64,000 bases of DNA, taken from NCBI GenBank assembly GCA_907165135.1, contig OU015567.1, forward strand, positions 13,392,001-13,456,000, written 5' to 3'. Made by a program: the position numbers and the translations under genes. Source of the DNA: Oikopleura dioica (Eukaryota > Animalia > Chordata). Position 1 is the first letter of the stretch. Each line of letters opens with the position of its first letter. This document shows positions 993 to 36,486 of this stretch, piece by piece. The notes beneath the pieces were generated by a model. The model did not search any database and had not been told where the DNA came from. It saw only the letters and a program-made list of their open reading frames with translations.

Positions 993-3591
993 ATGCTCAA
1001 ATGTTCTCATATCTTGGGAAGAGTCCTGCGTAAATCGAGTTGGAAGTATCCGAAAGATAAAATCCGCAATTTTTCTATCATCGCTCATGTTGGTATGAAT
1101 AACGCTAGTACTTTTATATGGGTATTGTTTGTAGACCATGGCAAGAGCACATTAGCAGACAGAATCTTGCAGATATGCGGCCACCAAGTTGATCGAAAGC
1201 AGACCCTGGACACGCTTGATGTTGAGCGCGAGCGAGGCATAACAGTAAAGTCAGTTGTTGCATCGGTCAAACATACGGTGAACGGAGAAGACTATTTGCT
1301 CAATCTAATTGATACTCCTGGCCATGTTGATTTCAGTTGGGAGGTGCAGAGATCATTGACAGCTTGTGAAGGCGTTCTTCTTGTGGTGGATGCGTCTCAG
1401 GGAGTCCAAGGAATGGTTCGTGAGATTATAGAGTTCTTTGCGAGGTTTTATTTTCTAAAAACCAAAATGAGCTCAGACAATGGCAAATTTCTATGTCGCG
1501 TTCGATCTTGGCCTATCCGTTATTCCAGTGTTAAATAAAGTGGATCTCCCGCATGCAGATGTTGACAAAACGATGATGGAGTTGAATCAGATGTTCGACA
1601 TTGAATTTGAAGAATGCCTCTCAATATCTGCAAAAAGTGGCATGGGTGTTACAGAAGTGCTGGACGAGATTGTCAATAGAATACCTCCTCCACTGCCAAT
1701 TGACGTAAGTGGGGGTGCTCTCTGGTGTTTTGATGCATCAATCGGCGGTCACTCAGGATCAGAATTAAAAATTTATACCAAATGCATGTATCAATCGTAT
1801 GTCTGCTTGTTTGTTTAATATTGAAAAGGGAGAATCAACTATGTAAAAATATTGGACGCGTTCCTATCCTCCCTGGCGATCGTTTCTTCCCCTGCAGTGA
1901 TAAATCTGATTTGATGAGTATCAAAGATGTCGGACGCTGCTTTCCGGATTTACAGCCAGATCCTGAGGGATTACTTCCTGGACAAATTGGCTACTTCTCA
2001 ACATTAAAAGCCAAGTCTCGTGTCACCGGAAAAGTTCTTGTGACAGATGAGAGGGCCGGAACAAAATTAACGGAAGACCCGAGCCTACCATTCAACCAAT
2101 TGAAAAACTCGACTCCTTCAGTATTTGCTTCATTCTTCCCTCATACTGACAACAAAGGCAGAATCAAAGAATTCGAAAAGTCAGTCGACTCGTTGATCCT
2201 CAACGACCCTGCGGTGACATCAACAAGGACTGCCTCGCCTGCTTTTGGATCAGGGCTGCGTTTGGGATTCCTCGGACAGCTTCATTTGGAAGTTTTCTCT
2301 CAGCGACTGAGGGATGATTTTGAAACGGATGTTATCGTTACTTCTCCATCAACAGCCTTCAGAGCGCGAGTCGACGAAAGTTTAAAAGATAAAAATTACA
2401 ACGCGATTCGACAAAATAGAACACTCGTAAGTTACTCGCGCTCTCATAAATAAATTATTGGCAATAACTAATTAAATTAAAGGTTGATCCAGAAGATCCC
2501 TATATCTTTGAATTCGAAGTTGCCGAAGAATTTATTCCGAGAAAATTTGTGACTGAATATCAAGAACTCTACTCGTTACTGACAGTTATCAGCCCCGTCG
2601 AATACTCTCCAGCAATTTTGAGTGCGGTTGAAGAAAGAAGAGGGTCTTATGTGAGTTCTGAAGAGATAGGGGACGGAAGGCTGATACAGTTTGTTGCCAA
2701 ATTTCCGGAGTCCAAATTTCCGGACACTTTTCAGATTTTAAGGGGTTTTAGTGGGACACTAACAAATTGACGATGACCCAAATTTCCGGAATTTTTTTTC
2801 AAATTAAGAAAAAAAATTGACGGTAGCTCATATTTTTTCTTCGAAATAAGGTACAAGAGGTTTAATACATCGACTTTCTTGTGTTTATCCTTGAGTTCTC
2901 CTATCAAACCCACTTTGTCGTCGTCTTTTTTGCGCTTAGACGACTTCTACACGGGTAAGTGACCATGTTTCGAAAAATTTTAAGGATGCTTGGTGGGACA
3001 TTATTTTTTCATAGGAAGGCCAAATTTCCGGACATTTTTCGGAAATCTGGGGACAAAATTAGTCCGGAAATTTGGAAACATACTGTATTCAAATACGAAA
3101 TTCCACATTCTGAAACGATCAGAAATTTTCACGGGGTTCTTAAAGGCGCGACTAGCGGATTCGGCTCGTTTGAGCTTGAAGAGCTCGACTGGCGCCCCGC
3201 TGAGCTCGTGGTTCTTTCAATTTCAATCAACTCGAAGGTAGTTCCAGAACTGCAAATGATAACGCACAAGCACTCAGCTGAAGCTCTCGGAAGAAAATTG
3301 ACGAAAGAATTTGTCGAGTTACTACCGATGCAAGATCATAAAGCCTCCGTCTCAGCGCACATAACCGCAGACCCTGATCAGCAGCGTGGTTTTTGGGGAA
3401 GCTCGTTTGGAACCCGACATACGAATTATAGACGCGAAGATACCACAAGATCAAAAGCTAACAAAAAGATTGACCTGCAAAGAAGACAAAAGAAAATTAA
3501 AGCGGAGAAAGATCGTCTTGAAAAGCTGAGGCAAATTGGAAACGTAAAGGTTCCAAAAGACGCTATAACATCTTTGTTCTCGCTGATATGA
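993..3591 (+). CDS. GUF1: Mitochondrial translation factor GUF1 (LepA/EF4 GTPase), multi-exon
   Basis: [66 protein letters not shown] and C-terminal [14 protein letters not shown]. Introns 1093-1134 (GT-AG), 1411-1471 (GA-AG), 1757-1828 (GA-AG, inferred), 2427-2482 (GT-AG). Apparent 1-nt frameshift near 1858 and a MITE insertion at 2687-3085. Confidence 0.93.
2687..3085. mobile_element. 399 bp Tc1/mariner-type MITE inserted in a GUF1 exon
   Basis: TA on both sides (2685-86, 3086-87). Termini CAGT...ACTG. About 23 bp TIR: CAGTTTGTTGCCAAATTTCCGGA versus reverse complement CAGTATGTTTCCAAATTTCCGGA. Internal copies of CCAAATTTCCGGA. Removing the element and one TA restores GRL-I-FKYEIP. Confidence 0.88.
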
Positions 3592-3698: not shown

Positions 3699-6600
3699 TT
3701 AGCCGAAACCGTTGAATGATAGAACGGAGCCGTTGCGCTTGGGCTTCTGCATTGGAAGAGGAGGACGAGTTGTCAAAGGGGGAGGCGCGAGTTGCTTTGG
3801 TTTCGCACTTGCGGGAGGCGGCGGTGGAGGCACCTTTTTGGGCGTGGAAGTTATACTGGGAGAAGCTTGTGGCGAGGCGGAAGGAACGGGCGGAACTGGG
3901 ACAGGAGTAGGAACCAGTCCGCGGCGTAGTGGACTGGAAGCAGAGGATGATGGAGTCCGGCGAATAGTTGCCAGGCCATTCGTGATTTCTAAAAACGGTT
4001 TGTTACATTCATCGGCTTTTCAGAATAGGTGGGAGCATGTAAATTTATGTGAACATGAGTGATACCTCTACGTGGTGGTTGATAATCGTCTGTGAAACCA
4101 CTAGGATTTGCCATGAATGGGGAGAGTGGTGCGGAGCTCATTGAGCTTATGCTGCGAGCCTGCTCACTATTCGCGCTGTTGTCGGTTGTATTCACTTGGA
4201 GCTCATTGAATTGGCTGCTGAGCACTGAAACAACAAGTTAAGTCAAGTTCATTCAGAGTTGTCACTGCGAAAGACTTGGTGGTCTCTGAACAAATCAGAC
4301 AGAAGGATTAATAAAATTTCTCATCTGACGATGGATTATCGAAATTACGAGTACGATATTCGTTAAAGTAAAATATTTATTTGACGTAGACTGCCAGCCA
4401 GACATGCTTAGGCCATCATTTTTACGGTAATTTGTTTTTAAGGTTAGTGTTTTTATTCTCACGTTCTGGTGGTGGCGGCGGCAAGACAAATCCATCTGGG
4501 AGCGTGTTGTTGAACTGATCTTGAACATTTGTTGAGTTTGTCTTGGTGGGTGATCCGGGGCAAGAAGCGTTGCGAGATGTGTTTTTGTTCTCATCGTAGG
4601 GCCCGGGTTTAGGCCAGTTGCGCCATGAATTTGTCCTGTTTGCGGCGAATGTAGCGGTTGGCGAATTCGACGTGTTGGTTGGGCAGCTGGTGTCAATCGG
4701 GAGCATCTCGGGGAGGTCGTTGTCGAGCGCTTGGGAAGTGAAACCAGAATCGTGTGATGTCGAGGAAAGTCGGTACTCAGAAGTTTGGCGTAAAAGTGTC
4801 TGTCGCAAGTCAGAAGGCGGTTCGGTTCTACCCGACGAATTTGAGTCTGATTTCGAACTGCTAATTGAATTCATCGAGCTGAAAAGATCTTTCAATTCTG
4901 ATTCTTTTATAACACTGAGCAATTTATGGCTTTATGATTATGGTGCTTTACAAACCTGACCGAGGACTTCCTAGCGTGGCTTCCGTTTCTTAGACTTCCA
5001 TTTGCCATCGCGATTTGTTCATCCAGCCAGCTATGAATTTGGTAAGACTTGACAGTCGTCACAGTTCCAAGGCTGCCACCAGATCGCTGCATTTTAGCGA
5101 GTTGAGCTCCAAAGGTAACTTGCGAGGCAACATAAGGAGAAAGTGAACGAACGAAGGTAGACATTCGCGCGCGATGTTCCACCAGTGCGTTGGCTACAGT
5201 ATCTTTGTTCACGTGGCGGAGTATTGGCGATTCGGACTGCTGATCCTGAAATTAATTTTTAAGGCGATTGGCTTTTTGAACACTTAATTCTTCGTGGCGT
5301 GAATGTTTTCATAACTAATTGGCTGGCTCAGACGAACTGTATATATCTGATCAATACTTCTATCGTCTACAATTTCATGGCTGAAAGGATTTCATTTATC
5401 CATATTTGCGCTAATAGAATAAGACAGTTTTACATGGAGGCGTGTTTTCTGTCACCAGCCACACACTAAATAATGCAAAAACAAGGGCAGGGAGCACAAA
5501 CTGTATTCAAAAACACACATCACTGCCAACATAAAACTATCATCGATGGAATACTTGGCAGGTGCGAAATAATAATCAGAGTCGATGCCAAATCGACGTG
5601 TACACGATGCTCACCTTTTGTCCTTGGGGTTTGGAGGATGATCCACGTCGAGAGCGACGGGACAAGGTCATTGCTGCCCGATTGAATATGTTTTCTGAAG
5701 ATCCCTTCGACAGCGATTTTGTGGAGCCATTCAGCTTCGAGGAGGAGCTTGAGTCGAGGCTCTTGTTCCACTCTTGTACTCGTTCACGAAGTGGCGAGAG
5801 GACGCTATCAGCAAGCTGTCTGAAATTTATCGATAAATACAGAACAAGTCATAGATGAATATCGATTTAAAACTCGAAAACTCTTGAGAGCTAAGGGGAT
5901 AAGACGCTGAGCCCCATAATCGCCCTCCCCGGAAGGGCTTCAATCTAGCACTTATCGAGGCGAATACGTTTTAGATGAAATACCATCTGTTCTATTATCG
6001 TAAATACGAGACGGGACTTACTTGACTGAGGCTTCTCGGAGCTCATCTGCGCAGCGTTGTTCGTCAACCAGTTGGCACAACAAAGCTCCGACTTCATCCC
6101 TTCCAGCCGAAGAGCGTGATGAGAAGTTTCCGACTTTGTTGAGCACTTCGAGGAACTGAGAGTGGGCTGCAATTGCCGTCCTATAAAATGTTGATTTGAG
6201 CATGTAATTTTGTTAAAGGAAGTAATAACAATGAAGACAACTTTCTTCCGCGTTTGATTCTTGTAGAAAATAATCGCATTTTGAACTTGTTTTGACCAAA
6301 AACGACTACGTATTTGTAGGGGCTCATAAAGATGAGGCAAGTGTGAAAGCGCATATACAGTTACCACGGGTGGTTTGTCAAAATGAAAGAATAAAGAAGT
6401 AGTGCGGCACGAAACGCGTGAACCGGAACGCTTCTTATTCAGAAGAAAAATCAATGGATCAACAATTAGACGCGTTTCATCTTTGGCCAGATTTTAAGAA
6501 ATCTCGTAATTGCTCAAAACAGACTCTGATAGATATAAAACGGGACACAATAACAGCAATCGGCCTGTGGAAAATTAACGCCTGATTGATTAACAAAAGG

Positions 6601-9600
6601 AGCGGGATAAAAATATGGGGATGATTAAAAGGGCAGGTTAAATTCTACTAAGCGGCTTTACCTGACGGCTGAGACGTAGCGCAGTCCAGATGAGATGAGC
6701 TCTTCCCAGATGACGTTCCCGGACTGAAATTGTGTTTTAGATAAAGAAGTGTATTGCGTCTTAGAATTGACAATCGTAAAATTCAATAAATTAAAGGCTT
6801 TATAAACGAGAAATAGGATTTTGAAAAACTCTCCGCGTCATGTTCAATTTGAAAAAAAAATAATCGATCATGCCATCTGGCCGGAGAGTACTTCCTCGGA
6901 CATTCGCTTCATCTAATCTTCAGGCTGTCCAAAAGAAGAGTAATGAAGGCTTTTGAAGCAGACTGTTGCGGAAGCACTTAATACTGACCCGCTCGGTGCG
7001 GCGCAATTTTCAACAAATATGCTCACAAAGTAGCTTCAGAGGGCACTTTCTGGCCGCTTGCCAAATTGCAATTGACTGACTTAGGCGCCCCTTCTATTTT
7101 GATTCCAAAGGCCGATTTCAATCAGCAGCGACCAGTGTTATTAGAATATTAATGAACTGGCTTACCATAAAAAGAGAGGAAAGAGAAACATTTCTTTTGG
7201 CCATTCTTTTGCTCAATTAGCTTTTTTCAATTTGAAGTGTGTTGTGTATCGATTATACGGATGCACGAGGGTTGATTACGCTCGACATTGACCTACAGTC
7301 TCTCTTCAATCTACTAATTAGCCCATCGACTGTGTTTTGGGCAGCTGAATTCTGTTCTGGACACAGTGCATTGATTTAAAAGAATTAACCCATAAATCAC
7401 TCGCCCGGGGGCAGACCAGTTATCAGGGCCAAGAAGTTTCGGATTAACAGACAGCAGGGGATAATCCGCTTATTCAAAAAGATCAAATCAATTTTGAACT
7501 GACCACAGCTGCTCCAATTCAACATCGTCGACCGACACGCGAGACGGGATTAATCGCCTTCCGCTTCCAGGATACACACAGAAGGCACAATGACTCTGGT
7601 CACAGACCGGACACCACGATTAACACGTCACTAAGAATTGGTCAAACTCAGCAGACTCTTTTAGATGACGACAGAGGTAGTAATGGTCCTTGAAAGCTAC
7701 TTATACGGCATTTATAAAGAAAAAAGTGGCTTCGTAAAATTTAATGCTGACTTTCATGAAATATTTATTGGATCTTTATGGTTGTGGTCTTTTTATGATT
7801 GTTTTGAACATTCGTTGTATCTAAAGTGCCTGGCTAAAGCCGTGATAATAAGATATTTAAATGTTCAGCGAGGCAAAACGGGAGCGGATCCGATTTTGAC
7901 GTGACGCCACAATGCGCCGACGACAGCAATGATATCCCCCAAACAAGTACCATTTTGTAGGGCTGATCCTTTCGAGTCCTCTCGAGGAAGCGCGCGCCCG
8001 AGCGTATAAATTTCGTCGGATGCGTTTGTAGCTAAACATCGCTGCTGGCGGAAATTTGGTTTCGCACCAAACATCCACAGCTCGAGCAAATTTGCCAAAT
8101 CATAAACGAAAATTCATGAGGCGCAGCTGTTTCCTGTTTGCGTAAGCAAGTCTGTGCACCTTAAATATAATGGCAGTTCCTTAAATTCGACCTTTTTGAA
8201 CGTTTATTGCTTCCTAAGGCACATAAAACCATCTTAACAATTCAAAAACTCTTGGCCAGCTTTCTGAATGCTATTTGCATACTTCAAATCATTAAACAGG
8301 AATTGAATAAGTATCCTGTTACGACCGTGAGAACTTAAGGGTAATCCTATACATCGGCGCGGCGCTGCTCGCTCGATCCGCGCTCCGCCAGAACCTATTT
8401 TTCACTCGGCCCTAAAATCCGAACGGAGTGAGATTTTTTCAAAATTTAAAAAGATTCGTAATCTATATACCCTCTTCTATTGCTCTAGCAAAAATGAAAA
8501 AAATCGGCAACGAGGAACTATCTGAAAACCGCCGGTTCCTTCAAAAGACATTTCCCGCCACATTTCTCATTCAAATTTCACGAAAATTAGATGGTCTTGT
8601 AGAGAATCGTCTGTTCTACAATTCCTCTGATTTAGATTTTCTTTTTGTGCTCTCAATAATTCTCTACGATAGTTTGAAGAGAGTGCCATTCTTTTCTGCG
8701 CGAGCGCGCCGTGAGAAATAGGAAGCAAAGAGGCGCGACAAAGAATAGCGCTCTTTTCAAATGACCATATAAAATTATTGAGAGCACAGAATCAAAATCT
8801 AAGAAACAGGAATTGTAGAGCAGACGATTCTCTACAAGACCATCTGATTTACGTGAAATTTGAATGAGAAATGTGGCGGGAAATGTCTTTTGAAGGAAAC
8901 CGGCGGTTTTCAGATGGTTCCTCGTTGCCGATTTTTTCATTTTTGCTAGAGCAATAGAAAAGGGTTTATGGATTACGAATCTTTTGAATTTTGAAAATCT
9001 CACTCCGTTCGGATTTTAGGCCGAGTGAAAATAGGTTCTGGCGGAGCGCGGATCGAGCGAGCAGCGCCGCGCCGATGTATAGGATTACCCTTAAATATTC
9101 ATCGAGAGGTAGTTGTAGAAATTCCCGAAAAATATGCATGCACAAGAGTCTGCTGGTCGGTTGCTGCATCCACGCAGAAGACACGGTGTATGGATTGGAA
9201 CATGCTGCCTCAACAAAACATCCACCCAAGTTTGAGGTGTCACGAGTTTGTTTCTTTGCGCCTAAATCGCCCTGCAGCTCCTTATCATTGGGTTCCTCCC
9301 GAAACTGCATCTGCTTTATTTTTAAGCCGCGTCTAGACTTATCGATTTCTCATCAAAAGGTTGAGTTTTGCATTATTCCTTATCGAATATAAGGCGGTTT
9401 CGCTTTCTTTGTGTCGACATAAGGGTCTCAAGTGGACAATACCCATACGCGCCCTTTGAACACCACTTCCCGTATTGTCTAATGCCTTTCATCCCTCGAT
9501 AAACTTCTCAATCTGCCTCGCAAATTTGAATCAAAGTCCTAAAAATGTCGCACAGGAAGTCCAAACAAACCCTCCCGCCCGCCCTTTACAATTCACTGAC

Positions 9601-11510
9601 CTATTGCAAATTAAAATTCCGCCGGCAATTATATAAATAGTTCACTCTCTTTTATGAAAACAAATGCTTTCAGAGCGGAAAAGCCATGTAATCTCTCAGG
9701 CAATTTAGAAGCTAATTACCATCTGACTCAGAAAGTCATCCGGCAAAGTCAATAACTAGTCAGCGGAAAGGACCTTCCTTAGCGTTCACATTTTTTGAGA
9801 ATCAAAAGAGGTTGACACAAAACAACTTCCTAAATTCCGTCCGTGGAACTAATAAGTTTACCAAATAAATGGTTTGAGGTCCAGTGCTTGCGAGTCCAAC
9901 TTGAGCGACACAAAGCGATTCCATGGTATGTTGTCCACGCGCGAAATGGGCCCCGCTAAATTCCATCCCGACAAGTATTGTCTTGAATACTCAAGTGGAC
10001 ATGTCACGTGTTCGCTTCTTTGTCGAATTTTTCAAAAATTAAAACCGAGCTAGTCCGGAATCTCGGTGTTACTCTGTTGATAAACATCCCCTTTCGCTAA
10101 GGGTCTAACAATTTTTAAAATCTGAAAAATCTAAGTCAATTTGCCGGGGATCAAAGATGCTCCTCAAAATTGAATTTCACCCACCGCTTTGGAAATTTTT
10201 CCTGGTAGGAGCCAGGTGACCTTTTTTGAGGCGGCCTGCGGGACAAGGTCGGGTGAAATCGAAAATGCCTCCCGCTGAGCATTCATCACATACTTAGCTG
10301 GAAACTTTCAAAATGAGCTGTCAATTGTTGCCCCTTACCAAAAAAGACTCACTATTGGAAATGACGATAAGGCCTAATTTGCCGCGAAATCGGCGAATTT
10401 TCCATAATGTTGCGCAATTATTGCTATGGGCCCTAATCCCCGTGCGAGAGCACCTGCAAGCTCTTTTTTCAACCCTTTGTCGAAGAAATTGGCCACTTTG
10501 AAAACTCGATCAAAAAGTGCAAAGTCTTTCTGAGGAGAGATTGAAAATCGCTTTTCAATTATTGACTTGATTTAGATAAAAATCGTGGAATCATAAACTT
10601 GTTGATTCTTTTCGGCAAATTTGACTTGCTCAAGTTTTATGTTGATTTTACACTTTTTAAAAGTTCGCGAAAAAGAGGCGATTTAGACAATGAAGCCGGG
10701 ATTGTTGCTCTCATGGGCGACAAGTGGGGTTTAAAAATAAATCACAAGTAAAATTTTGAAGCGTGGGAAGCGAAGAGAAGGGGACTTATTTTTAGTTTGA
10801 CGATTTTAATCAGCTCAAACAAACCGCAGACTTTGCTCAAGTCGGCTGAGTAGGAAGCGATGAGCTCGAGCTTTTGAGGACGATTTCCGATATGGGAAAA
10901 TAAAAAATGGGACGAGGCCAAATAAGGGCGCTTTTCAGAGGCGGCGACTTTTTAAAAAGTTTGAGTGAACAAAGAGCGGATTTACAGAAAAGTAGTTTTT
11001 GTGTTTATTAGTTACGGGATTTAGGAGTTGATAAGTCCTCCTGACTCTTGCGCGGAAATTATAAAGAGCGCGAAACCTTGTTTACAAAAGCTCAAGGCCA
11101 AAACCCTTAAAAATCGATAACCACTTTAAGTCTTTTGCAAGTGCTTCTCGCATCAATTTCTCATTTTCCGCGGCCGGAGCGGAAAAACCGATCACCGTTT
11201 GAGATCCCTTTCACCCCTGAAAATTCTAGCTGCGAAATTTCACGGGAATCGTCGATCAATAACGATAGAAATTTTTGGAACGGTTTCAAAAGATACTAAT
11301 TTGAAAGTTTAGTACATTATCAATAATCACATTGATTGGCTGTAAAAACATCGGGTAAATTATTATCCGCGGCTGTCAACTTTATTGGATTCGGGTCGGA
11401 AATTGAATGGAATTTTACGATGCGATAAATTGCGATCCTTTTTGCTCATTTACCTTCATCTCATGTCGCACAGAAGTGAATATATCGTTGAGGACTCTTT
11501 CTTCCATCAT
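3699..11510 (-). CDS. MTSS1: MTSS1/MIM-like I-BAR (IMD) domain protein with Pro-rich C-terminus; first intron about 4.7 kb
   Basis: Exon 1 11454-11510 MMEERVLNDIFTSVRHEMK, exon 2 6662-6723 SGNVIWEELISSGLRYVSAVR, then TAIAAHSQFLEVLNKVGNFSSRSSAGRDEVGALL... and QLADSVLSPLRERVQEWNK, matching the IMD helices. The MIM motif SSTSHDSGFTSQ lies in ORF 4422-4922. Pro-rich tail ends at TAA 3699-3701. No clear WH2 motif seen. Confidence 0.82.
8339..9090. mobile_element. 752 bp foldback (long inverted repeat) non-autonomous DNA transposon with TTAA flanks; Kolobok-like termini
   Basis: TTAA 8335-38 | GGGTAATCCTATACATCGG ... CCGATGTATAGGATTACCC | TTAA 9091-94. Arms of about 340 bp are near-perfect reverse complements around a short spacer. 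Lies in MTSS1 intron 1. Confidence 0.9.
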
Positions 11511-12561
11511 TTTCGTAAATTTATTTTCATCAACTCTCTTTTTTAGTTTTATCTTGTCGTTTATCCTCTTCTGGAAAGTCTTCTGTTTAATTAACTCTCT
11601 CGTTTGGCGGCGTATCTGACTCCGTTTTCAGTTAATTGTCTTGGGTGAAGGCCAAAATTTTTGGGCGAATTTGAGAAAATTTTCAATTCGGTTCCTCAGC
11701 GTTCGAACGTGTTACTGCTTCGAGTAGCGGGATAATAGGGAGGGCGGCGCGCGTCGTGGGCGCCACGCGCATCGTGCGTCCGAGCTCAGCGCGCAGCCGA
11801 TCCGCCCGCCAGGTGTCGCCACCTTTTACCGCAACAAAACAACCCGCGGTATCCTGCCAAGATCACTGATAACCCAAATTTGGGTGAAATTGATGCTGCG
11901 TTTTGAAATATGCAAATAGATAATGCGGGACATGCATCCTACTAACCTACCTTTTTAAATTCCCTGCTGGGTTCTGAACCAACAATACAGTAAAAGTAGA
12001 AATCACCCGTTGGGTAAATACTCTTATCTTATCGCTTATCTGGTTGTTCACAGATTCTCATGAAAACACACAAAGGTTCTTATTCATAAAAATTCCAAGA
12101 CAGAGAGTAACTTTTCTATTGTCCAAATAAAAGGTCGGAAATCTCATCTTTCCGTTAGCTTTGACTTACTGTTTGTTAACAGAGCAATTCTAGACGTCAA
12201 ACAGTAGTTGTTCACCCGTAAATCCATTCATGAATTCCAGTTTCAAAGGGGTCTATTTTATCCCAAGATCTATGCGATATTGATTTTGAGAAGAAGAGGC
12301 ACCTCGTAAAATGAAAATTAGGAAATGTCAAGATAGTTGCGAGCGATATTCAAGAATCGCGTGTAGAATTATGATCCTCGTTGTAAATTATGGCTATTGT
12401 TCTGTCAAGACTGGTGAGAAGCAATATTAAGTCGTTCTTTTTTGAAAGTTCTGAATTTCTGAAATGATGAAGTTAATATATTCACTGAGAAGATACCTTC
12501 TGTCAAATCTGCAACCAATTTTTATGACGAAAGAAACAGAATTCTGAAAGCTGAAGCTGAA

Positions 12562-13904
12562 ATGAAGCTTTCTATTGCTCTTGCAAGTGCTGTATTTGCG
12601 GATACGCAGTGTACCTCGAAAGGAGGAACTTGCACTGACTATCGATACACGACATGTTACGCTGGTTACGAGAGATATATTTGTAATGGTGACAGCAACC
12701 GTCAGTGCTGTCTTTACTGCTCGCCAACTTGTGAAGCTAAAGAGGAACTTGACTCAGCCGGCGATTCGAGGTAAGACTAAAATTTTTGAGAACTGAAATC
12801 AACGAGGACTCACCCTTCTTCTTACAACCTTCAAAATTGAATAAGGTGCACAGCAGCTGGTGGCGAGTGTAAGCACAATACGAACTACTGCAACGGAACC
12901 TACCAATCTGGTCTTTGCGGTGGCGGTGCTTCTAGACAGTGCTGCACCGGAAAGGTAAGAGAAGATCTCATTTTGCAGTTGTTACTCTTCCAGGAGGATC
13001 CAGATCCACCAGTTGACGTTGGAGGTGATTATTTCAATCGTTACTACGGTTACAAGCTGGGTGGAAAAATCAGTGGTGAAGATTTTTCGTCATTGAGCTC
13101 AGCGAAGAATAGATGCTCGACCCTTGGCTCCAGCTGTTCTGGAGTTGTGAATGACTACGCAGGACACTATTATTTGTCAACGAGCTATACATTCAGTTCG
13201 GCAAGTGGACAGACCACTTACGAAAAAGGCGAGAAGGAACGCGTCATTACTGTTTTGAAATTGCTCTAAAATAGATTCAAAGCAGCGTTCATCTCATAAA
13301 AGTGGTCGGCAAGATTCGTCCCTCGAGTAGAATGGGAAGCCAGAAGCCCAACTGGTGTAACTAACTTCCAACTTCCAGCACGGCATGGACTGATTGGTCA
13401 TCACACTGCTGGTTCTCACTGTAGCGACAAGGCTTCCTGTATCAGCAATATGAAGGGCACTCAAAACTATCACATGGACTCTTTAGGATGGTCCGATATT
13501 GGATACCAGTTCCTCATTGGAGAAGACGGTCGCATCTATGAGGTAAATTTTCTATCATTTTCGATCATTCTATGAGACAGGGGCGAGGTCAATGGCGACA
13601 AGGAGCTCACTGTAGCAACTGGAACTCGAACACAATTGGCTTCTCGGTCATGGGCAACTTCAGCAACCGTCTTCCGAACCAAAACGCTCTTGATGCTGTG
13701 GATGAGCTCATTGCCTGGCTAGAGCGAAAGAATTATGTGAACAAGAACTGCTACGAGTTCGCCGGTCACCGAGACAAGAATGCAACTGTGTGTCCAGGAG
13801 ATCCTCTCTATGGTAATTTTTAATGCTGATATAGAAGTAATATTCGAACCGTTTTAGCTCACTGGGGATCTGGAAAATATCCATTTTGGCATAGAAAGTG
13901 CTAA
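12562..13904 (+). CDS. PGRP: Secreted peptidoglycan recognition protein (predicted Zn-amidase) with two N-terminal six-Cys defensin-like repeats and a small Cys module
   Basis: Signal peptide MKLSIALASAVFA. Amidase_2 motifs FVPRVEWEAR, HHTAG, WSDIGYQFLIGEDGRIYE/GRG, GAHC, IGFSVMGNF, GHRD, TVCPG with Zn ligands H/H/C and the catalytic Tyr present. Last exon AHWGSGKYPFWHRKC* ends at 13904. Confidence 0.9.
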
Positions 13905-14035
13905 ATCGAATGAAATTAAGAATAAAATATTTTGTCTTTGGAACGAGTAAGGATTTATTCTTTCATGTACGGACAAAACATTTGAAACAAAATATAAAAA
14001 TGGTGAAGTACAGGTAAAGAGGGATGGGTCGATTT

Positions 14036-15036
14036 CTAATGCTGCTTGACTTTGTTCTTCTGTTCTAAAAATTGCTCCAATGAGCGAATTATGCTCTTGT
14101 TCATTCTGCCGTCGAGGTGTTTGACGCGGTAGCCGTTGTCGATTAAAAGTTGTTGCAGAACGATTGTGGTCTTGTATCCCCATCGACCTTGATTGAAGTT
14201 TAGAGACACGAAATGCATTGGATAGCTACCTGGCTTGGAGTTATATTTGTCGTTGAAGTCACGAGTGAACGCAACCCGCGCGTCTTGGTCGTGGAGGAAC
14301 TGTCGGAAAGCTAAAGATACAATGTCAAATTGAATAATTAACAAGGCCGTCTAGGTAGACATTAATTTGATGTAAGAAAAGCTTTGATGTACTTTCTCAC
14401 CTTTGATGACGGCTGAGGACCATCCGCCTGAAACTGAACTTGGTGATAGATAACCTTCGTCCTTCAAGAAGTCTTGCAAGAGTCCTATCGAATTGTAGCC
14501 GAATCTAAAGCAAATTGACGATTTAAAACTTTGCTTTATTTTACCTCGAGCCTGGCGTAACGCGGTGCTTAGATTTCCTCGCGGAATCTTGCATCATCAA
14601 GAACCTTTGTAGCGACTCCCTTGTGTTGGTGCCAAAGATACCGCATGGCTTCGCGTCGGGGTAGATTCTGAGGTCGTACATGAAGTTTTGAAGAGTTCCA
14701 ATCATCAGCGAGTTGAAAAGATCGTTGACTGGAAGTCGTCCCTTCTCAGAAAGAAATTCTTTCAACGAGTTGATAGAGCGCCAGTCGAATTCATCTGATG
14801 ATGGTTTCGTTTTAATTGTTCTTATGGTAGAATAATATTTTGATAAAATTGTTCATCGCTTACCCTAATTCATATTCTCTGTCGAGGAAAATTGTCAAAC
14901 TGTTCTTCAATTCTCTACTGAGCTGCAGCTCTGGATCGAAACTCGTACTTCGGATTCTTCTGGAGCTTCTTCGTTTGCTTCTGCTTCTGCTCGCCTCAAC
15001 AGAAAACAGCAAAACGCAAAGTTTATAAAAAATCAT
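14036..15036 (-). CDS. Secreted 275 aa protein built from about 7 peptidoglycan-binding-domain-like (PGBD) repeats
   Basis: Four exons (15036-14864, 14820-14545, 14504-14401, 14310-14036) joined by GT-AG introns, 828 nt in frame. Signal peptide MIFYKLCVLLFSVEA. Repeats include FGTNTRESLQRFL, FGYNSIGLLQDFL, WSSAVIKAFRQFL, WGYKTTIVLQQLL and MNKSIIRSLEQFL. The PGBD assignment is by motif resemblance only. Confidence 0.75.
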
Positions 15037-30300: not shown

Positions 30301-31237
30301 TCACACGCGAAAATTCGGAATTTACCGTGGCAAAGAATATTTTTTTGAAGATTGATCGTACTACTAAGTTCAAGACTGATTGCCTGGGTTGCCGATCATC
30401 AAGGGCTTGGTTGAGTTGAGACGCGCCTTCGAAAAGACAAATTAATCACGTGCTCGAGTCTTTGATTTTTTCCTACCAGAAACAAGTTGAGGTTCTCCCA
30501 CTGAATTACAGTGTCATCGTCAAGGCGGAGAAACCACTCATATTGATCGATGAGTTTGTCGTGGAAAAAAGCTTTCAAAGCGGATCTTAAACTTTTTCCA
30601 TCCTTTTTTTCATCCTCCCGCTTTTCAGTCAATCAATAATTGATAATTATCCGATCCTAACATTTTGAATGATTTTTTCTGAGGCGGATAGACGTGGTCA
30701 TCCACATCTGCCATCGAAATTGTATTGAAGCCGGGTTCCGGTTTGGAAAAGAAAAGTACATCCACGTCATTTCTATCTTAAAATATATGCGTTAAAATCT
30801 TAGAAAACGGCCCACCAAAGCAGTTTAAAACAACCCAGACGATGCTTATCAGTCGACAATCTCCTTACCTAAATCCCTAAGCCAAGTGTCGCTAAAGGCC
30901 TTCACTCGCGTACGCAAGAATTCTGGCGTCGTCATAATTCCAATAACTGCACGTTTTTTCTTCGTTTCATCTGGTCTTTTGCTGATTTGCGAGACATTGC
31001 CAGGATAGAGTTTTTCACCGGAAATATTTGGCTTTGGTTGATTTTGCTTTAAATAATTTTCGACGCAGGCACTTTGGAAAAATAACAAATTGCCTTTCTT
31101 AGGTGAAGAAAACGTGGCTACGCAGTTTTAAAAATGCCTTGCAAAAGTACTGATAAGGCTTAATTCTAGCTTTTCACCTCTCCTAGCGCATAACCAAGTA
31201 TAATGCCAATAAAGAAATTCGCTTCTCTGAAAACCAT
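27390..31237 (-). CDS. CHSY1: Chondroitin sulfate synthase (CHSY1-like), multi-exon
   Basis: Signal anchor FFIGIILGYAL; AVIGIMTT...TRVKAFSDTW; YEWFLRLDDDT; YCMGGPGVLFS...HEDVEIGRC; YFPIFFSQY...GFWRSFSFG...KGWGGEDIAFF...HPWHPKSC. Confidence 0.9.
28808..28925. repeat. Foldback minisatellite: three 17 bp units followed by four inverted units
   Basis: AGAGCTTCAT(T/C)T(G/C)CCCA x3 (28808-28858), GGC spacer, then TGGG(G/C)A(G/A)ATGAAGCTCT x4 (28862-28925, last unit partial). Lies in a CHSY1 intron. Confidence 0.9.
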
Positions 31238-31294
31238 TTTTTCTTTCTTCAATGCAGCAATAAAAAACAGCCAGGTACTATTTTTTTCGCGAGT

Positions 31295-34200
31295 TTATTT
31301 TTCGAGTGCTTTATTTATTTTATTCAAACTTTGGCGCCTTTTCAGAAAGATTAACAGCTTGAATGAAAAGATCAAAAAATGTGTCTTTTTTCTCAATTTT
31401 TTTTTCTCATAAAATGAACTTTGCTTTTGAGTCGGAAGTTTCGAGCTTTGATTTTCTGTTGGACTTGGAGGAGGCTGGAAGAGGCTTGTACTAGAGTTGT
31501 ATTTCGGTAAAGAGGTTAATGTCAAAATTATCAGGTACCTTTTTGGCTGAACTAATCGCTAGTGCGCTTTGAACATGCTTCACTCTCCCGGAAGTCTTCC
31601 ACCTGCATCGCTGGAAAACATCACATGAAAGTTTTACAAGCGCGAACAGATTCAACCCGAGAAATAATCCCACAGTGCCGCCTAAATCCGAGAGGAAATC
31701 GACGACAGTATATGTTGCTTTTTCAACGAGAATCATGTCTTGCTCGGCTAGTTGAATGATCATTGTGGCGTGCTCGGTGATTGTTTTTTGCTCGCCGGCG
31801 TGAATGTCAGCGTACTAAGTTTTCGAGTTCTGAATGGGTTAGTAGAAGTCTTTGTGTTCTCGACGAACTCTTTCCTGGATTGATTTCTGATGAAACTGAT
31901 TCTGCAAGCATTGCGGTAAGCACTCTTTATTGTAGTTTTTTAAGCTATTGGGAAGAAGATTGTTTTGTTAATTGAACCATTCCTGATCCCATTCGAGGCA
32001 CTTCCCGCCAGACGTCAATGTGCTTCGCCGCGCAAGTCGCATGAGCTAGGAAATTGCACGGCTTGCTTTCGCAAGGATTTTACGTCAATGAGCGTTGTTA
32101 ATTTAGAAAATACAATTAACAGGGCTCTGGGTGGAATCCTTGCCATTTAGTGTAATTTGAAAGGAGTCTCGTGACTGAAATAAGCCCGCCGATGTAATCT
32201 CATTTCGGTTGTGAAATGTCTTCTGTGAACTTTGAACAGCAGCTGGTGAATAAACCAGCTCAGTTCTTTTAATGCAATTTTGTTATTTAATCAAGGCTTT
32301 CTTTGTTTTCTCGCTCAAAAATAAACTGAAATTCTTCGAAAATTACGCGAGCAGTGAAAATTGAATTTACCTTCTTTTAATTTATCCCTTTTCTCCCCCG
32401 ATAGGATTGAATAAAAAATTCAATTTACAATGAAAATTTTTAAGAGGACATTTTCCTGGATAGCATTCGCATTCGCGGCAGAGAGTTTTAACCAGAGAGG
32501 CATACTGGCATTTGACCATACTGTAAGGATTTTGAGGAGTGTTCGGAATGCATTTTGTGTGCTTAAATTATCATTATTGCTATTTTGATAAATGAATTTT
32601 TAGACAGATAATTCATCACTTTAATGGTGGCCTCGAAAAGTGTGCGTTGGAAATGGTCAACAATCCCTTGGGATAGATAACAGAGCAGATAAAAGAAGAA
32701 AGAACTTTTTTTCTATGAAAAAAATGAAAGTTTTTACTTTGAATATTTTTTCTGCCAGTTTTGCTAACGGATTCATTATGAGGTAACGATATTTTGAGAA
32801 TCTCTACATTCTGTGTTCTAGTACTCCTCCTGAAGACATTGTCGACTACTGGGACAAGAATAACCTCTTCGACGACAGGCACCCTTTTGAGTTCGGGGAA
32901 ATGCCGACCAAACTGCACTCGTTGCTTCATTTTAAGGATTTTGTCGATAGAAAAGGAACCGAGCTAGACAACCCTGCATACTTCTTTTTCAACATCTGAG
33001 TATGAATAAACTCACCGGATCTCCGAGAAATGTCTGTTGAACATTTTGAACTGAAATAATTGGCGTCAATCTGGAGCTGAGGTAGACTGAGTGGCCGGGA
33101 ATGAACATTTCCGTCTCTGGGTGCTGGTAGTGAACGTTGAAGCCTTGCATAACGCCGTTCCATCCAAAAGTGGCGTCCGACTCATTTTGCGCTAGAATCG
33201 TTGAGTGATGTAGAGACAACAGTAGATTTACCAAATGTTATGCTGAGACGAGCTCGTCCCTGGCTGTTAATTTGCTCCGAACTGTTGTACATCAGACAGT
33301 AGCCATAAAGAGTTGACTTGAAAAGATTTGAATATAGCATTATGTACCGGTTATCGGAACGTACCACGAATTTCCATGTAAATTTGCAGTCAGCATAATT
33401 AAAATCGCATCCGAGAATGCTGTACCGCGGCCTCGTTTTTCGGAAAAAGTCGGACAATCTCAAACTTGCGAGTTCAGTCCTAAACGAATCCAGGTTAATT
33501 GGCAATATATTTCAAACATAATTTAAGAAATCAGATTGCTTGCCTTAATAGAATTTAGCTCGATTGGATTAACTAGTAGCTTTCGTTTTTACCGCGCGTT
33601 CATGTCGCTCCTCAAATCATCCTTTCTTTTCGTCGTTTAGGTTAATTACAAACGAAATTATTTACGAGAAGACAAAACAAAATTAAATAACGCGTCAATA
33701 TAAAAAGTAGCTGCGTATAGTTAGAAGCCTCACTCATACCCAGTTTCATGCTATACTTCATTTAAAAATCAATTTTTGAACGGTTGCTATTACAGAAAAT
33801 AGGACTCCTTATTCTGTGAAATGAAATAATTAAGCGGTAATAGCTCGAATCGACAAAAAAATCGACAAATAATTAAAATTTTTGGTATATTTTTTTTCTG
33901 AAATCTGATTGGCCGAATGCGGACATCTGATTGGTGGAAAATTAGACCAAAATTTAGGTCGTTATTGTCGCAAATTTGTCGATTTCTGCCTCTTCCCAAA
34001 TATACCAAATATGGTAGGTATAATTCCCAGGGAGAAAATATTGACTTTTACCCCGAAAGATAATTTTTACAAGAAAAGTGAGTGGAATTCCAACTCTCTT
34101 ATAACACGCTTACCACACTTCAGTCTCATTCAAACGTAGGGATTTTTCAACATCTTCTTTTTGCTCCTGTTTGCTTAAATAAGGGGCATAAATAGAGACA

Positions 34201-35647
34201 TGCAAATGTACGTATACTTGGATCTCCCGTCGACTTTTTGAAAACCGCCGTAAAATATTCTGATCCAAGCAGGAGAAATCGCCGGAAAGTTTTTCTGCAA
34301 TCTATTTGCGGGTCATTTTTGGCAAGTTCAAAGTTGGTTTGACAAATTGAAAGACCCGTAATTAGAAAGTGAGTGCTGAGATTGACTGCAAACGTAGATA
34401 TTGGGAAAGCGACGACTTCCGGTTTTAGTTTTCTGCTCTTGAACGATCTTTTCAAAGGTTTTTTCGTGATCAAGTAAGATTCTTAATTTTCAAAGCGTTT
34501 TATGGGGAAGTGGCTCGAATCGACAAAATAATTGCGACAAATAATTCGAATTCTGCAAAAAAAATTTTTCAAAAATCTGATTGGCCTACCGACCGAATGC
34601 GGACATTTCCAAAGTTTTACCAAAATTTCGGATGAAATTGTCGCATTTTTTGACGATTCGTGCCTCCTCTTATTTGCTTATTCTTTCCAGGGAACAGCAT
34701 TTTAAACCCTTGTCGAAGGATAATTTGTATACTTAAGGATATAGCCTATGAAATTGAACTTTCATAGCGCCTAAATGCGACGTCGGATCATTTTGTTTCA
34801 AGCGCAATCCTATCTAAACATGTACGCAGAACTTGATTCTGGTACTTTTTTAAAAATTTTCATTTGAATTTTTCTCTGTAGAGCGTTTTGAAATCTTACG
34901 ATCGCGATTCCTCGAAATTTTTACATTAAATCGGTCGAGTTTTTTTGATAGAAAAGTAATCTAGACCCTTATCTACAATATTGTGGGTTCGGTTTTCTCT
35001 TATCCCGTCAAAAACCGATTTTAGAGCTATTTCCGTGAGGCTTCCTCGGCGCGTGAATAGTGTAAAAAGCGCTGCGCTGGGTGCTCAATCTTTCGACTCC
35101 TCTTTCCCGAGAGAGTGCGCGCGTTTGAAAGAGCGCTCTGATTGGTTGGACCCAAAAAAGCGCGCATGGAAGAAAAACAGTAGCAAGAAAGAGGAAAACA
35201 CTAGAATGAAAATTTGGCCGAGTTTGATAATTTTTCAGCCACAATATTCTAGTTTAGCATCATGCTAATGCAGTCATTGGTTTAGTTTTAGCGATTTAAT
35301 GTAAATATTTCGAGAAATCGCGATCGTAAGATTTCAAAACGCTCTACAGAGAAAAACTAAAATGATTTTTTTTTTAAATACCAGAATCGAGTTCTGCGTA
35401 CATTTTTAGATAGGATTGCGTTTGAAATAAAATCATCCGACGTCGCATTTAGGCGCTATGAAAGTTCAATTTCATAGGCTATATCCTTAACATAATCGCT
35501 CCATCCAGAATAAAATGTGACGATGAAACCCTAAAAATTTAAAGGCATTCCAAAATCGTTCAATAAAGAATTAATTCATACAGCGATCCAAACTCCTGCG
35601 ATGAAGCTCTTTTTTGAAAAGCTGCCAATACTCGACCCCTCTAACAT
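31295..35647 (-). CDS. DEG/ENaC (ASIC-like) ion channel subunit, multi-exon; ends approximate
   Basis: TM1 and post-TM1 VWIA/GFIVTFYSGWSDYVK/YTNYPSTR; RRFPNIYVCS; CDFNYADC...YGYCLMYN; TM2 YTVVDFLSDLGGTVGLFLGLNLFALV. Confidence 0.85.
33841..34665. repeat. Two degenerate copies (about 33841-33990 and 34510-34665) of an internally palindromic ~150 bp repeat in DEG/ENaC introns
   Basis: Shared GCTCGAATCGACAAAA...CGACAAATAATT and AAATCTGATTGGCC...GAATGCGGACAT; each copy ends with TTGTCG motifs inverted relative to its start. Confidence 0.6.
34737..35486. mobile_element. 750 bp TTAA-flanked TIR element (Kolobok-like MITE) coinciding with a GA-AG intron of the DEG/ENaC gene
   Basis: TTAA 34733-36 | GGATATAGCCTATGAAATTGAAC ... 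GTTCAATTTCATAGGCTATATCC | TTAA 35487-90. Inverted arms of about 200 bp. Confidence 0.92.
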
Positions 35648-36486
35648 TTCTTCTTTTACAAATAAAAATGGTGAATCGTCAAGAAAGAAAAAAAAGTTTG
35701 AATAAAAAAGGAGGGTTTGCTCATCTAGTCGCCCTTTTACTGAATAATAAATAGCCTTGTGTCAGAAAAGCCAGGAACTATCAAAAGACTGCTAATGATA
35801 TTAGCCATTTATTTTCCTTCTGTAAGCCACAATCAGCATTTTCTGGAAGTCTAAAAACGTCGATAAACAGGTTCTTACAGGCAGAAAACGGGACTTCTAT
35901 TCAACCAACGTGTTGACGGCGAAACATGCTTGCATGTACATTGGTTGTGGTGATGTTTCCAGAGCCAGACACGGTTTTGTAAATTCAGACAGGCAGATTA
36001 TCCTCATCAACTTATGTTAAACTAGCACGAGTTGTTTCACATGGACGTTTTCTTTTTCAATTTTTGACTGAGCTTAACCCTGTCTCGAGCAAAACACCAG
36101 TGGTAGACCATGAAACAGGGACTCTTTCGCCAAATATCATGACCGTTGAAATAGAGACCTCTAAGAAGTATTTCCGCCTAAAAATAAGCCCCCCTTATTT
36201 TCTTATATTTGATATTATTTCTGTTTTTAGATCATCTGAATCGCTAGACCTGGTTGGTTCCTTAACGACTTTTTTCCCGTAAGGCAATTCGTCAAACAGA
36301 ACTAAAATAAATATTGTCTTTTTCGGGAGAAAAAATAATGATAGAGATAACCACGAATTGTTCGGCCGAGTTGACTAAATTTCTTGGTAGCCCCAAGGAA
36401 CTTGAATCGTGCGCTGGAAAGACGTGTTGGATCGCTGTTTCTAAAGATGGCGGTGGTGTTATAAACGGAGCCATTGTTTTTGGTTC

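Follow-up and report, generated by a model that had tools for sequence, protein, structure and literature searches.

The analysed window, a 64,000-nucleotide stretch of the Oikopleura dioica genome, contains on its minus strand a split gene that likely encodes a divergent DEG/ENaC channel and whose second exon is interrupted by a 750-nt foldback transposon. The parts of the gene, in reading direction, and those of the element are as follows.

35647–35582, minus strand: putative exon 1, with an ATG at 35647–35645, reading MLEGSSIGSFSKKSFIAGVWIA and placed from its open frame and GT donor.
35581–35531, minus strand: intron 1, 51 nt, GT-AG.
35530–35486, minus strand: part of exon 2 before the element, reading GFIVTFYSGWSDYVK, the end of TM1.
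34731–34708, minus strand: part of exon 2 after the element, reading YTNYPSTR, with a GT donor next to it at 34707.
34707–34448, minus strand: intron 2, 260 nt.
From 34447, minus strand: exon 3, with the motif FPNIYVCSQ.
33479–33365 and 33190–33016, minus strand: later exons, among others.
31814–31494, minus strand: final open frame, stop to stop, holding the last coding exon with TM2 and marking the 3′ end of the gene.
34737–35486, no strand assigned: foldback MITE, a non-autonomous DNA transposon of 750 nt, with termini GGATATAGCC...GGCTATATCC (GG...CC).
34733–34736, on the 3′ side in the gene strand: copy 1 of the TTAA duplication, which with the G at 34732 forms a TTAAG acceptor; the empty site described below keeps one TTAA.
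35487–35490, on the 5′ side in the gene strand: copy 2 of the TTAA duplication, which with the G at 35491 forms a canonical GT donor.
34737–34933, pairing with 35292–35486: inverted-repeat arms, 92% identical over approximately 197 nt, the outermost 52 nt being identical.

The assignment of the host gene was based on its last exon and on motif resemblance, with the exons searched singly. The last exon matched the Pfam family ASC (E 4.4e-5; profile positions 418–450 of 455) at 23.1 bits, slightly below the curated cut-off of 23.6, and its top 22 matches in PDB were all to DEG/ENaC TM2, each of them weak (E 0.004–0.15). Channel-like motifs were found in the exons, namely Y..YP then FP....C after TM1, and C....C....G.C..YN, and a Pfam search with six further exon pieces returned no family match. 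The DEG/ENaC identity proposed in a preliminary description of this DNA is likely, given the resemblance of the last exon to ASC and TM2 and the motifs, with a sub-threshold score and with the other exons unmatched.

Contigs from a DNA run carrying the same species label (X5) were placed on positions 31100–36100 of the window, from which they diverged by approximately 3%–8% in the flanks of the element. In the last exon, 11 of the 15 differences between the window and X5 were synonymous, and three of the four non-synonymous differences lay in the C-terminal tail. Two apparent lesions in X5, a premature stop (33319) and a 1-nt insertion (behind 33352), both fell within a 48-nt in-frame GT-AG intron (33363–33316), indicating that this segment is an intron even though it is open through 16 codons in the window. 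The other defined introns were intact, with GT-AG borders and lengths of 40–51 nt, and the GC content was about 40%. Given the mostly synonymous changes in the last exon, the intronic position of the X5 lesions and the intact introns, the host gene looks alive and functional. The preliminary description had also taken the segments on both sides of the element as exonic, and their coding nature is borne out by the last-exon matches in Pfam and PDB, the substitution pattern against X5 and the motifs after TM1.

A search among 1.84 billion protein representatives found no full-length protein of the host gene; the matches were ORF fragments from related genomic contigs of 1.2–1.5 kb, which stop short of the insertion site. 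The gene belongs to a large, probably dispensable family, and such a family, together with the lack of a full-length protein in that search, means that a null allele could drift.

Several further features of the gene were observed. Two of the gene's introns each hold a direct copy (75%–82%) of a repeat of approximately 150 nt, at 33830–33977 and 34500–34650; one copy enlarges intron 2 to its 260 nt, and X5 contigs showed rearranged joints between these repeats (33943 to 34623 and 34504 to 34701). Between exons 3 and 4 (34295–34386), in-frame joining through a GT-AG intron costs 10 residues (the 92-nt option); the best short in-frame option is a 62-nt GG...AG intron at 34356–34295, and a 1-nt deletion in X5 at 34316, inside it, fits an intron. 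This interval is possibly a native non-canonical intron of the same channel gene. In a related lineage, represented by two ENA metagenome contigs (L116 and L117) and protein P0001, the orthologous intron (...KFV to STLYGYC...) is approximately 180 nt longer and open in frame throughout, which suggests another lineage-specific insertion in the channel gene.

The minus strand across the element reads ...GAT TAT GTT AAG | GATATAGCC ... ATATCCTTAAG | TAT ACA AAT TAT CCT. If the element were retained in a transcript, translation would meet a stop (TAG at 35458–35456) 10 codons into it. As RNA, the element interval folded into a single long hairpin with an energy of −375 kcal/mol, which corresponds to z = −36.5 relative to shuffled sequences. 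Of the features that mark a MITE, we observed the TTAA duplication, purine-purine (RR) termini, inverted repeats, the absence of a long ORF, multiple copies and an empty site. A piggyBac MITE was rejected, since it would be expected to have CCC...GGG termini and the element ends in GG...CC. The ends of piggyBac elements begin with CCC, and CCCTAGAAAGATA, a string that co-occurs with piggyBac and TTAA in the literature, is the piggyBac terminal repeat. The published signature of Kolobok and Kolobok MITEs is a TTAA target duplication with RR termini (PMC6004289). Because the element combines this duplication with GG...CC (RR...YY) ends, its assignment as Kolobok-like is supported on two of the defining features, and the earlier view that it is a TTAA-duplicating transposon of the Kolobok rather than the CCC-ended piggyBac type agrees with the TTAA on both of its sides and the single TTAA at the empty site. 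Kolobok MITEs such as the Xenopus T2-MITE share with it the TTAA duplication, purine-purine termini, long inverted repeats and high copy number (PMC6004289); the T2-MITE termini read AGGRR, whereas those of the Oikopleura element read GGATA, the sequences are unrelated, and the Oikopleura element could not be tied to a transposase.

Neither a transposase nor a second copy of the element was found within the 64-kb window. A metagenome scan with a 17-nt terminus returned 115 single matches, including two on gut-metagenome contigs, none of which extended; all were chance matches. Two other elements were noted in the window. An unbiased scan for TTAA with inverted ends recovered a second, unrelated TTAA-flanked foldback MITE of 752 nt (8335–9094; termini GGGTAATCC...GGATTACCC). 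This MITE splits a minus-strand open frame (8966–9310) at a sense-strand TTAAG, where scarless removal would be GG...AG; the putative coding ORF had no match in Pfam. The other, at 2684–3088 inside a plus-strand open frame, is flanked by TA, has inverted ends of 26 nt (ATACAGTTTG...) and resembles a Tc1/mariner-like MITE; its inverted repeat was confirmed.

In X5, two contigs joined position 34731 directly to 35486, skipping 754 nt, with a summed depth of 126, which falls within the depth of the flanks (mostly about 90–180). This is the site before insertion, with one TTAA, and probably on both haplotypes of that animal. The depth over the element was 4,000–14,500, with 5,500–7,400 in the centre and 13,000–14,600 in the arms, a figure inflated by the mapping of each arm to the other as well, and 287 pieces of the element from X5 were at least 99% alike. 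The depth excess of roughly 50-fold suggests roughly fifty copies of the family in X5, depth itself not being a copy number. Together, the exact empty site and the family excess indicate that the insertion is genuine, that its family has many copies and that a second individual lacks it. The preliminary description had proposed a presence/absence polymorphism as a check; the insertion is present in the window, and X5 carries an exact empty site. The insertion is recent, as another individual still carries the untouched site, and its absence from X5 means that selection has yet to vet it.

Donor and acceptor pairs that would leave an in-frame, stop-free message were enumerated. Three short-range solutions were obtained, all with the acceptor CCTTAAG|TAT at 34732.

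34732–35485, minus strand: candidate GA-AG intron, 754 nt, with donor AAG|GATATA at 35485; scarless.
34732–35491, minus strand: rival canonical GT-AG intron, 760 nt, with donor TAT|GTTAAG; in frame, with the loss of Val-Lys (VK).
Donor at 35479, minus strand: GC-AG option, 748 nt, 6 nt downstream of the GA; in frame, with the addition of Asp-Ile (DI).

Deletion of 35485–34732 (754 nt, GA...AG) in silico gave GFIVTFYSGWSDYVKYTNYPSTR, with the frame restored exactly and free of stops, and the same 754 nt are missing from the X5 DNA. The interval 34732–35485 given in the preliminary description is exactly this GA...AG interval, its sequence reads as described there, and the predicted restoration of the coding sequence is reproduced both in silico and by the natural empty site. 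The claim of a precise GA-AG intron held as regards this restoration but overlooked the canonical GT donor 6 nt upstream. This GT donor exists because the target was a sense-strand G-TTAA-G. Among the TTAA sites of the window, about 2%–3% have the G-TTAA-G context, and on either strand taken singly 13%–16% are followed by a G. The rarity of the former context is suggestive of survivorship, although the argument is post hoc, this very property having led to the choice of the finding.

PMC7072748 reports unusually many GA-AG introns in O. dioica, in which a conserved AG precedes the GA and a conserved A, at a position that the paper does not give, follows it. The abundance of such introns, which the preliminary description had stated, is thus documented, and the donor AAG|GA fits the reported AG|GA context. 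In the donor AAG|GAT, the upstream AG is present, position +3 holds a T and position +4 an A. Of the introns of O. dioica, about 11%–12% are non-GT/AG; in the Okinawa assembly the share is 11% and the median intron is 49 nt (PMC8008620). The 754-nt interval is approximately 15 times that median and would be atypical as an intron. The pyrimidine tract of the acceptor is poor. The 5′ splice region is locally unstructured before transcription reaches the distal arm, so that early donor recognition may be possible before the long stem forms.

Three runs of oligo-dT bulk RNA (X12–X14), with 1.5–1.8 billion letters read per run, were searched for transcripts of the locus. The numbers of reads placed were 6, 8 and 2, respectively; all were partly aligned and 90%–95% alike, and none lay at a junction. 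Six of the X13 reads, at 34109–34147, continued on both sides with diverged homology that included a 3-nt indel, which indicates that their source is a paralogue or an orthologue from a diverged lineage. The outcome of X12–X14 says nothing either way on splicing and is uninformative rather than negative.

The explanation that we propose, and to which we give somewhat less than an even chance, is that the insertion allele is rescued by in-frame splicing from either donor. A Kolobok-like, TTAA-targeting foldback MITE entered exon 2 recently, just after the first membrane helix, and the duplicated TTAA with the flanking G would form the AG acceptor (CCTTAAG|). The GA donor would derive from the element's own GGA end, its use being scarless, and the GT donor, 6 nt away, from the G before the first TTAA, its use dropping Val-Lys. 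The stem of approximately 197 bp formed by the inverted arms may draw donor and acceptor together. Given that either route would yield an in-frame mRNA, the element would act like an intron that has just arisen. This reading draws on the in-frame GA-AG, GT-AG and GC-AG solutions, the anatomy of the insertion, the X5 empty site with the family excess, the functional appearance of the gene and the lack of local structure in the 5′ splice region before the distal arm has been synthesised. It also fits the literature on GA-AG introns (PMC7072748), on the share of non-GT/AG introns (PMC8008620) and on transposon introns (PMC3443670, PMC11282704). Much of the evidence can also be read as that of a broken allele, in which the insertion disrupts the gene and transcripts either retain the element or are spliced wrongly, the survival of the allele being due to its youth, to recessiveness or to the dispensability of the paralogue. 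We regard such a broken allele as a serious possibility, slightly less probable than rescue. The long duplex of the −375 kcal/mol hairpin can sequester both splice sites, the interval is 754 nt long with a weak, pyrimidine-poor acceptor, X12–X14 contained no junction or other supporting read, and a full-length annotated or transcript-derived protein was not found among the 1.84 billion representatives. The insertion is absent from X5, where the empty joint has about flank depth, so that selection has yet to act, and in a large and probably dispensable family a null allele could drift. Moreover, the GA donor has T at +3 and would lack the conserved downstream A if that A belongs at +3, its own A being at +4. 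Simple disruption, however, leaves several in-frame splice solutions unexplained, as well as an insertion at a context as infrequent as G-TTAA-G (a post hoc consideration). It must also be set against a species that tolerates GA donors (PMC7072748) and a clade in which transposon-born introns have been reported (PMC11282704, PMC3443670).

Within the splicing explanation, a stricter version, with exact GA-AG splicing as the sole route of removal and the wild-type protein as its product, appears unlikely. It would account for the exact restoration, but a canonical GT lies 6 nt upstream with the same acceptor and in frame, and X12–X14 yielded no junction read. Spliceosomes normally prefer GT, which also weighs against exclusive use of the GA. 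The AAG|GA context does resemble that of O. dioica GA-AG introns (PMC7072748); the same paper cites the one human GA donor to have been studied, which depended on a GT 6 nt upstream, with both being used. Rescue at the DNA level, whereby a transposase would excise the element precisely in soma or germ line, as TTAA elements can do without a footprint, and revertant cells would supply the function, is very unlikely. The TTAA duplication is compatible with such excision, as is a multi-copy family in which many X5 pieces are at least 99% alike, but there is no transposase in the window and, to our knowledge, footprint-free excision is established for piggyBac and not for Kolobok-like elements. 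The X5 empty site is footprint-free, as a revertant would be, but it could equally be the ancestral state, and a haplotype that differs by 3%–8% in the flanks indicates an old empty allele, not a revertant. Least probable of all, and hardly credible, is an assembly artefact in which a repeat copy was misplaced into the exon; the family is indeed multi-copy, but the arms end precisely at a perfect TTAA duplication, beyond which the exon carries on in the flanks.

Introners are reportedly a general phenomenon, a view associated with Huff et al. in 2016 and Gozashti et al. in 2022. Like the Oikopleura element, the introners of Micromonas and Aureococcus are short, non-autonomous, exonic and multi-copy, with one splice site from the element and the other co-opted from the duplication. 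They differ in having a built-in canonical site and working at nearly every insertion, whereas the Oikopleura element would be scarless only where G follows TTAA (13%–16% of window TTAA sites, as above). The main text of Gozashti 2022 does not name Oikopleura. For Oikopleura, Table 1 of PMC3443670 (citing Denoeud 2010) already lists the gain of introns through transposon insertion, which agrees with the statement in the preliminary description that transposon-derived introns had been proposed there. TIRs and TSDs are present in the non-canonical introns of the larvacean Fritillaria borealis (Henriet et al. 2019, through the summary in PMC11282704). These MITE introns and the Oikopleura candidate come from the same animal class and share TIRs, a border TSD and non-GT dinucleotides that are part element and part duplication. 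The Fritillaria borders are mostly AG-AC or AG-AT after an exonic TAC and were demonstrated by transcriptome, whereas the Oikopleura candidate, predicted from sequence, would have GA-AG or GT-AG borders at TTAAG. The tandem donors recall those of human FGFR (Brackenridge et al. 2003, cited in PMC7072748), in which a GA also lies exactly 6 nt downstream of a GT and the choice amounts to two residues. The FGFR pair is conserved and regulated, whereas the Oikopleura pair was made by chance from a G, the TTAA and the GGA end. Given that transposon-born introns are already known in the clade, what is specific to the case at 34737–35486 is the combination of tandem GT/GA donors with a documented empty allele.

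A more general and rather speculative proposal, which we consider improbable as it stands, is that GG- or GGA-ended, TTAA-flanked Kolobok-like MITEs are a standing source of the unusually many G(A/G)-AG introns in Oikopleura. Exonic copies would be filtered by a one-base rule and later shrink to short non-canonical introns, and the present polymorphic copy would be one caught at birth. Under this rule, scarless removal would be open to any copy that lands at TTAAG on the sense strand, as GA-AG if GGA-ended and as GG-AG if GGG-ended. The simple TTAAG rule of the preliminary description is correct as sequence logic, but is represented by one case here and by a second, unvalidated case in the window.

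If the element is not spliced, the insertion would be no more than a segregating knock-out allele in one of the channel paralogues. If carriers do splice it, it would be an intron caught at birth, whose presence varies naturally between individuals and whose two donors compete, and would offer a direct test of how DNA transposons make non-canonical introns in a chordate with fast intron turnover.
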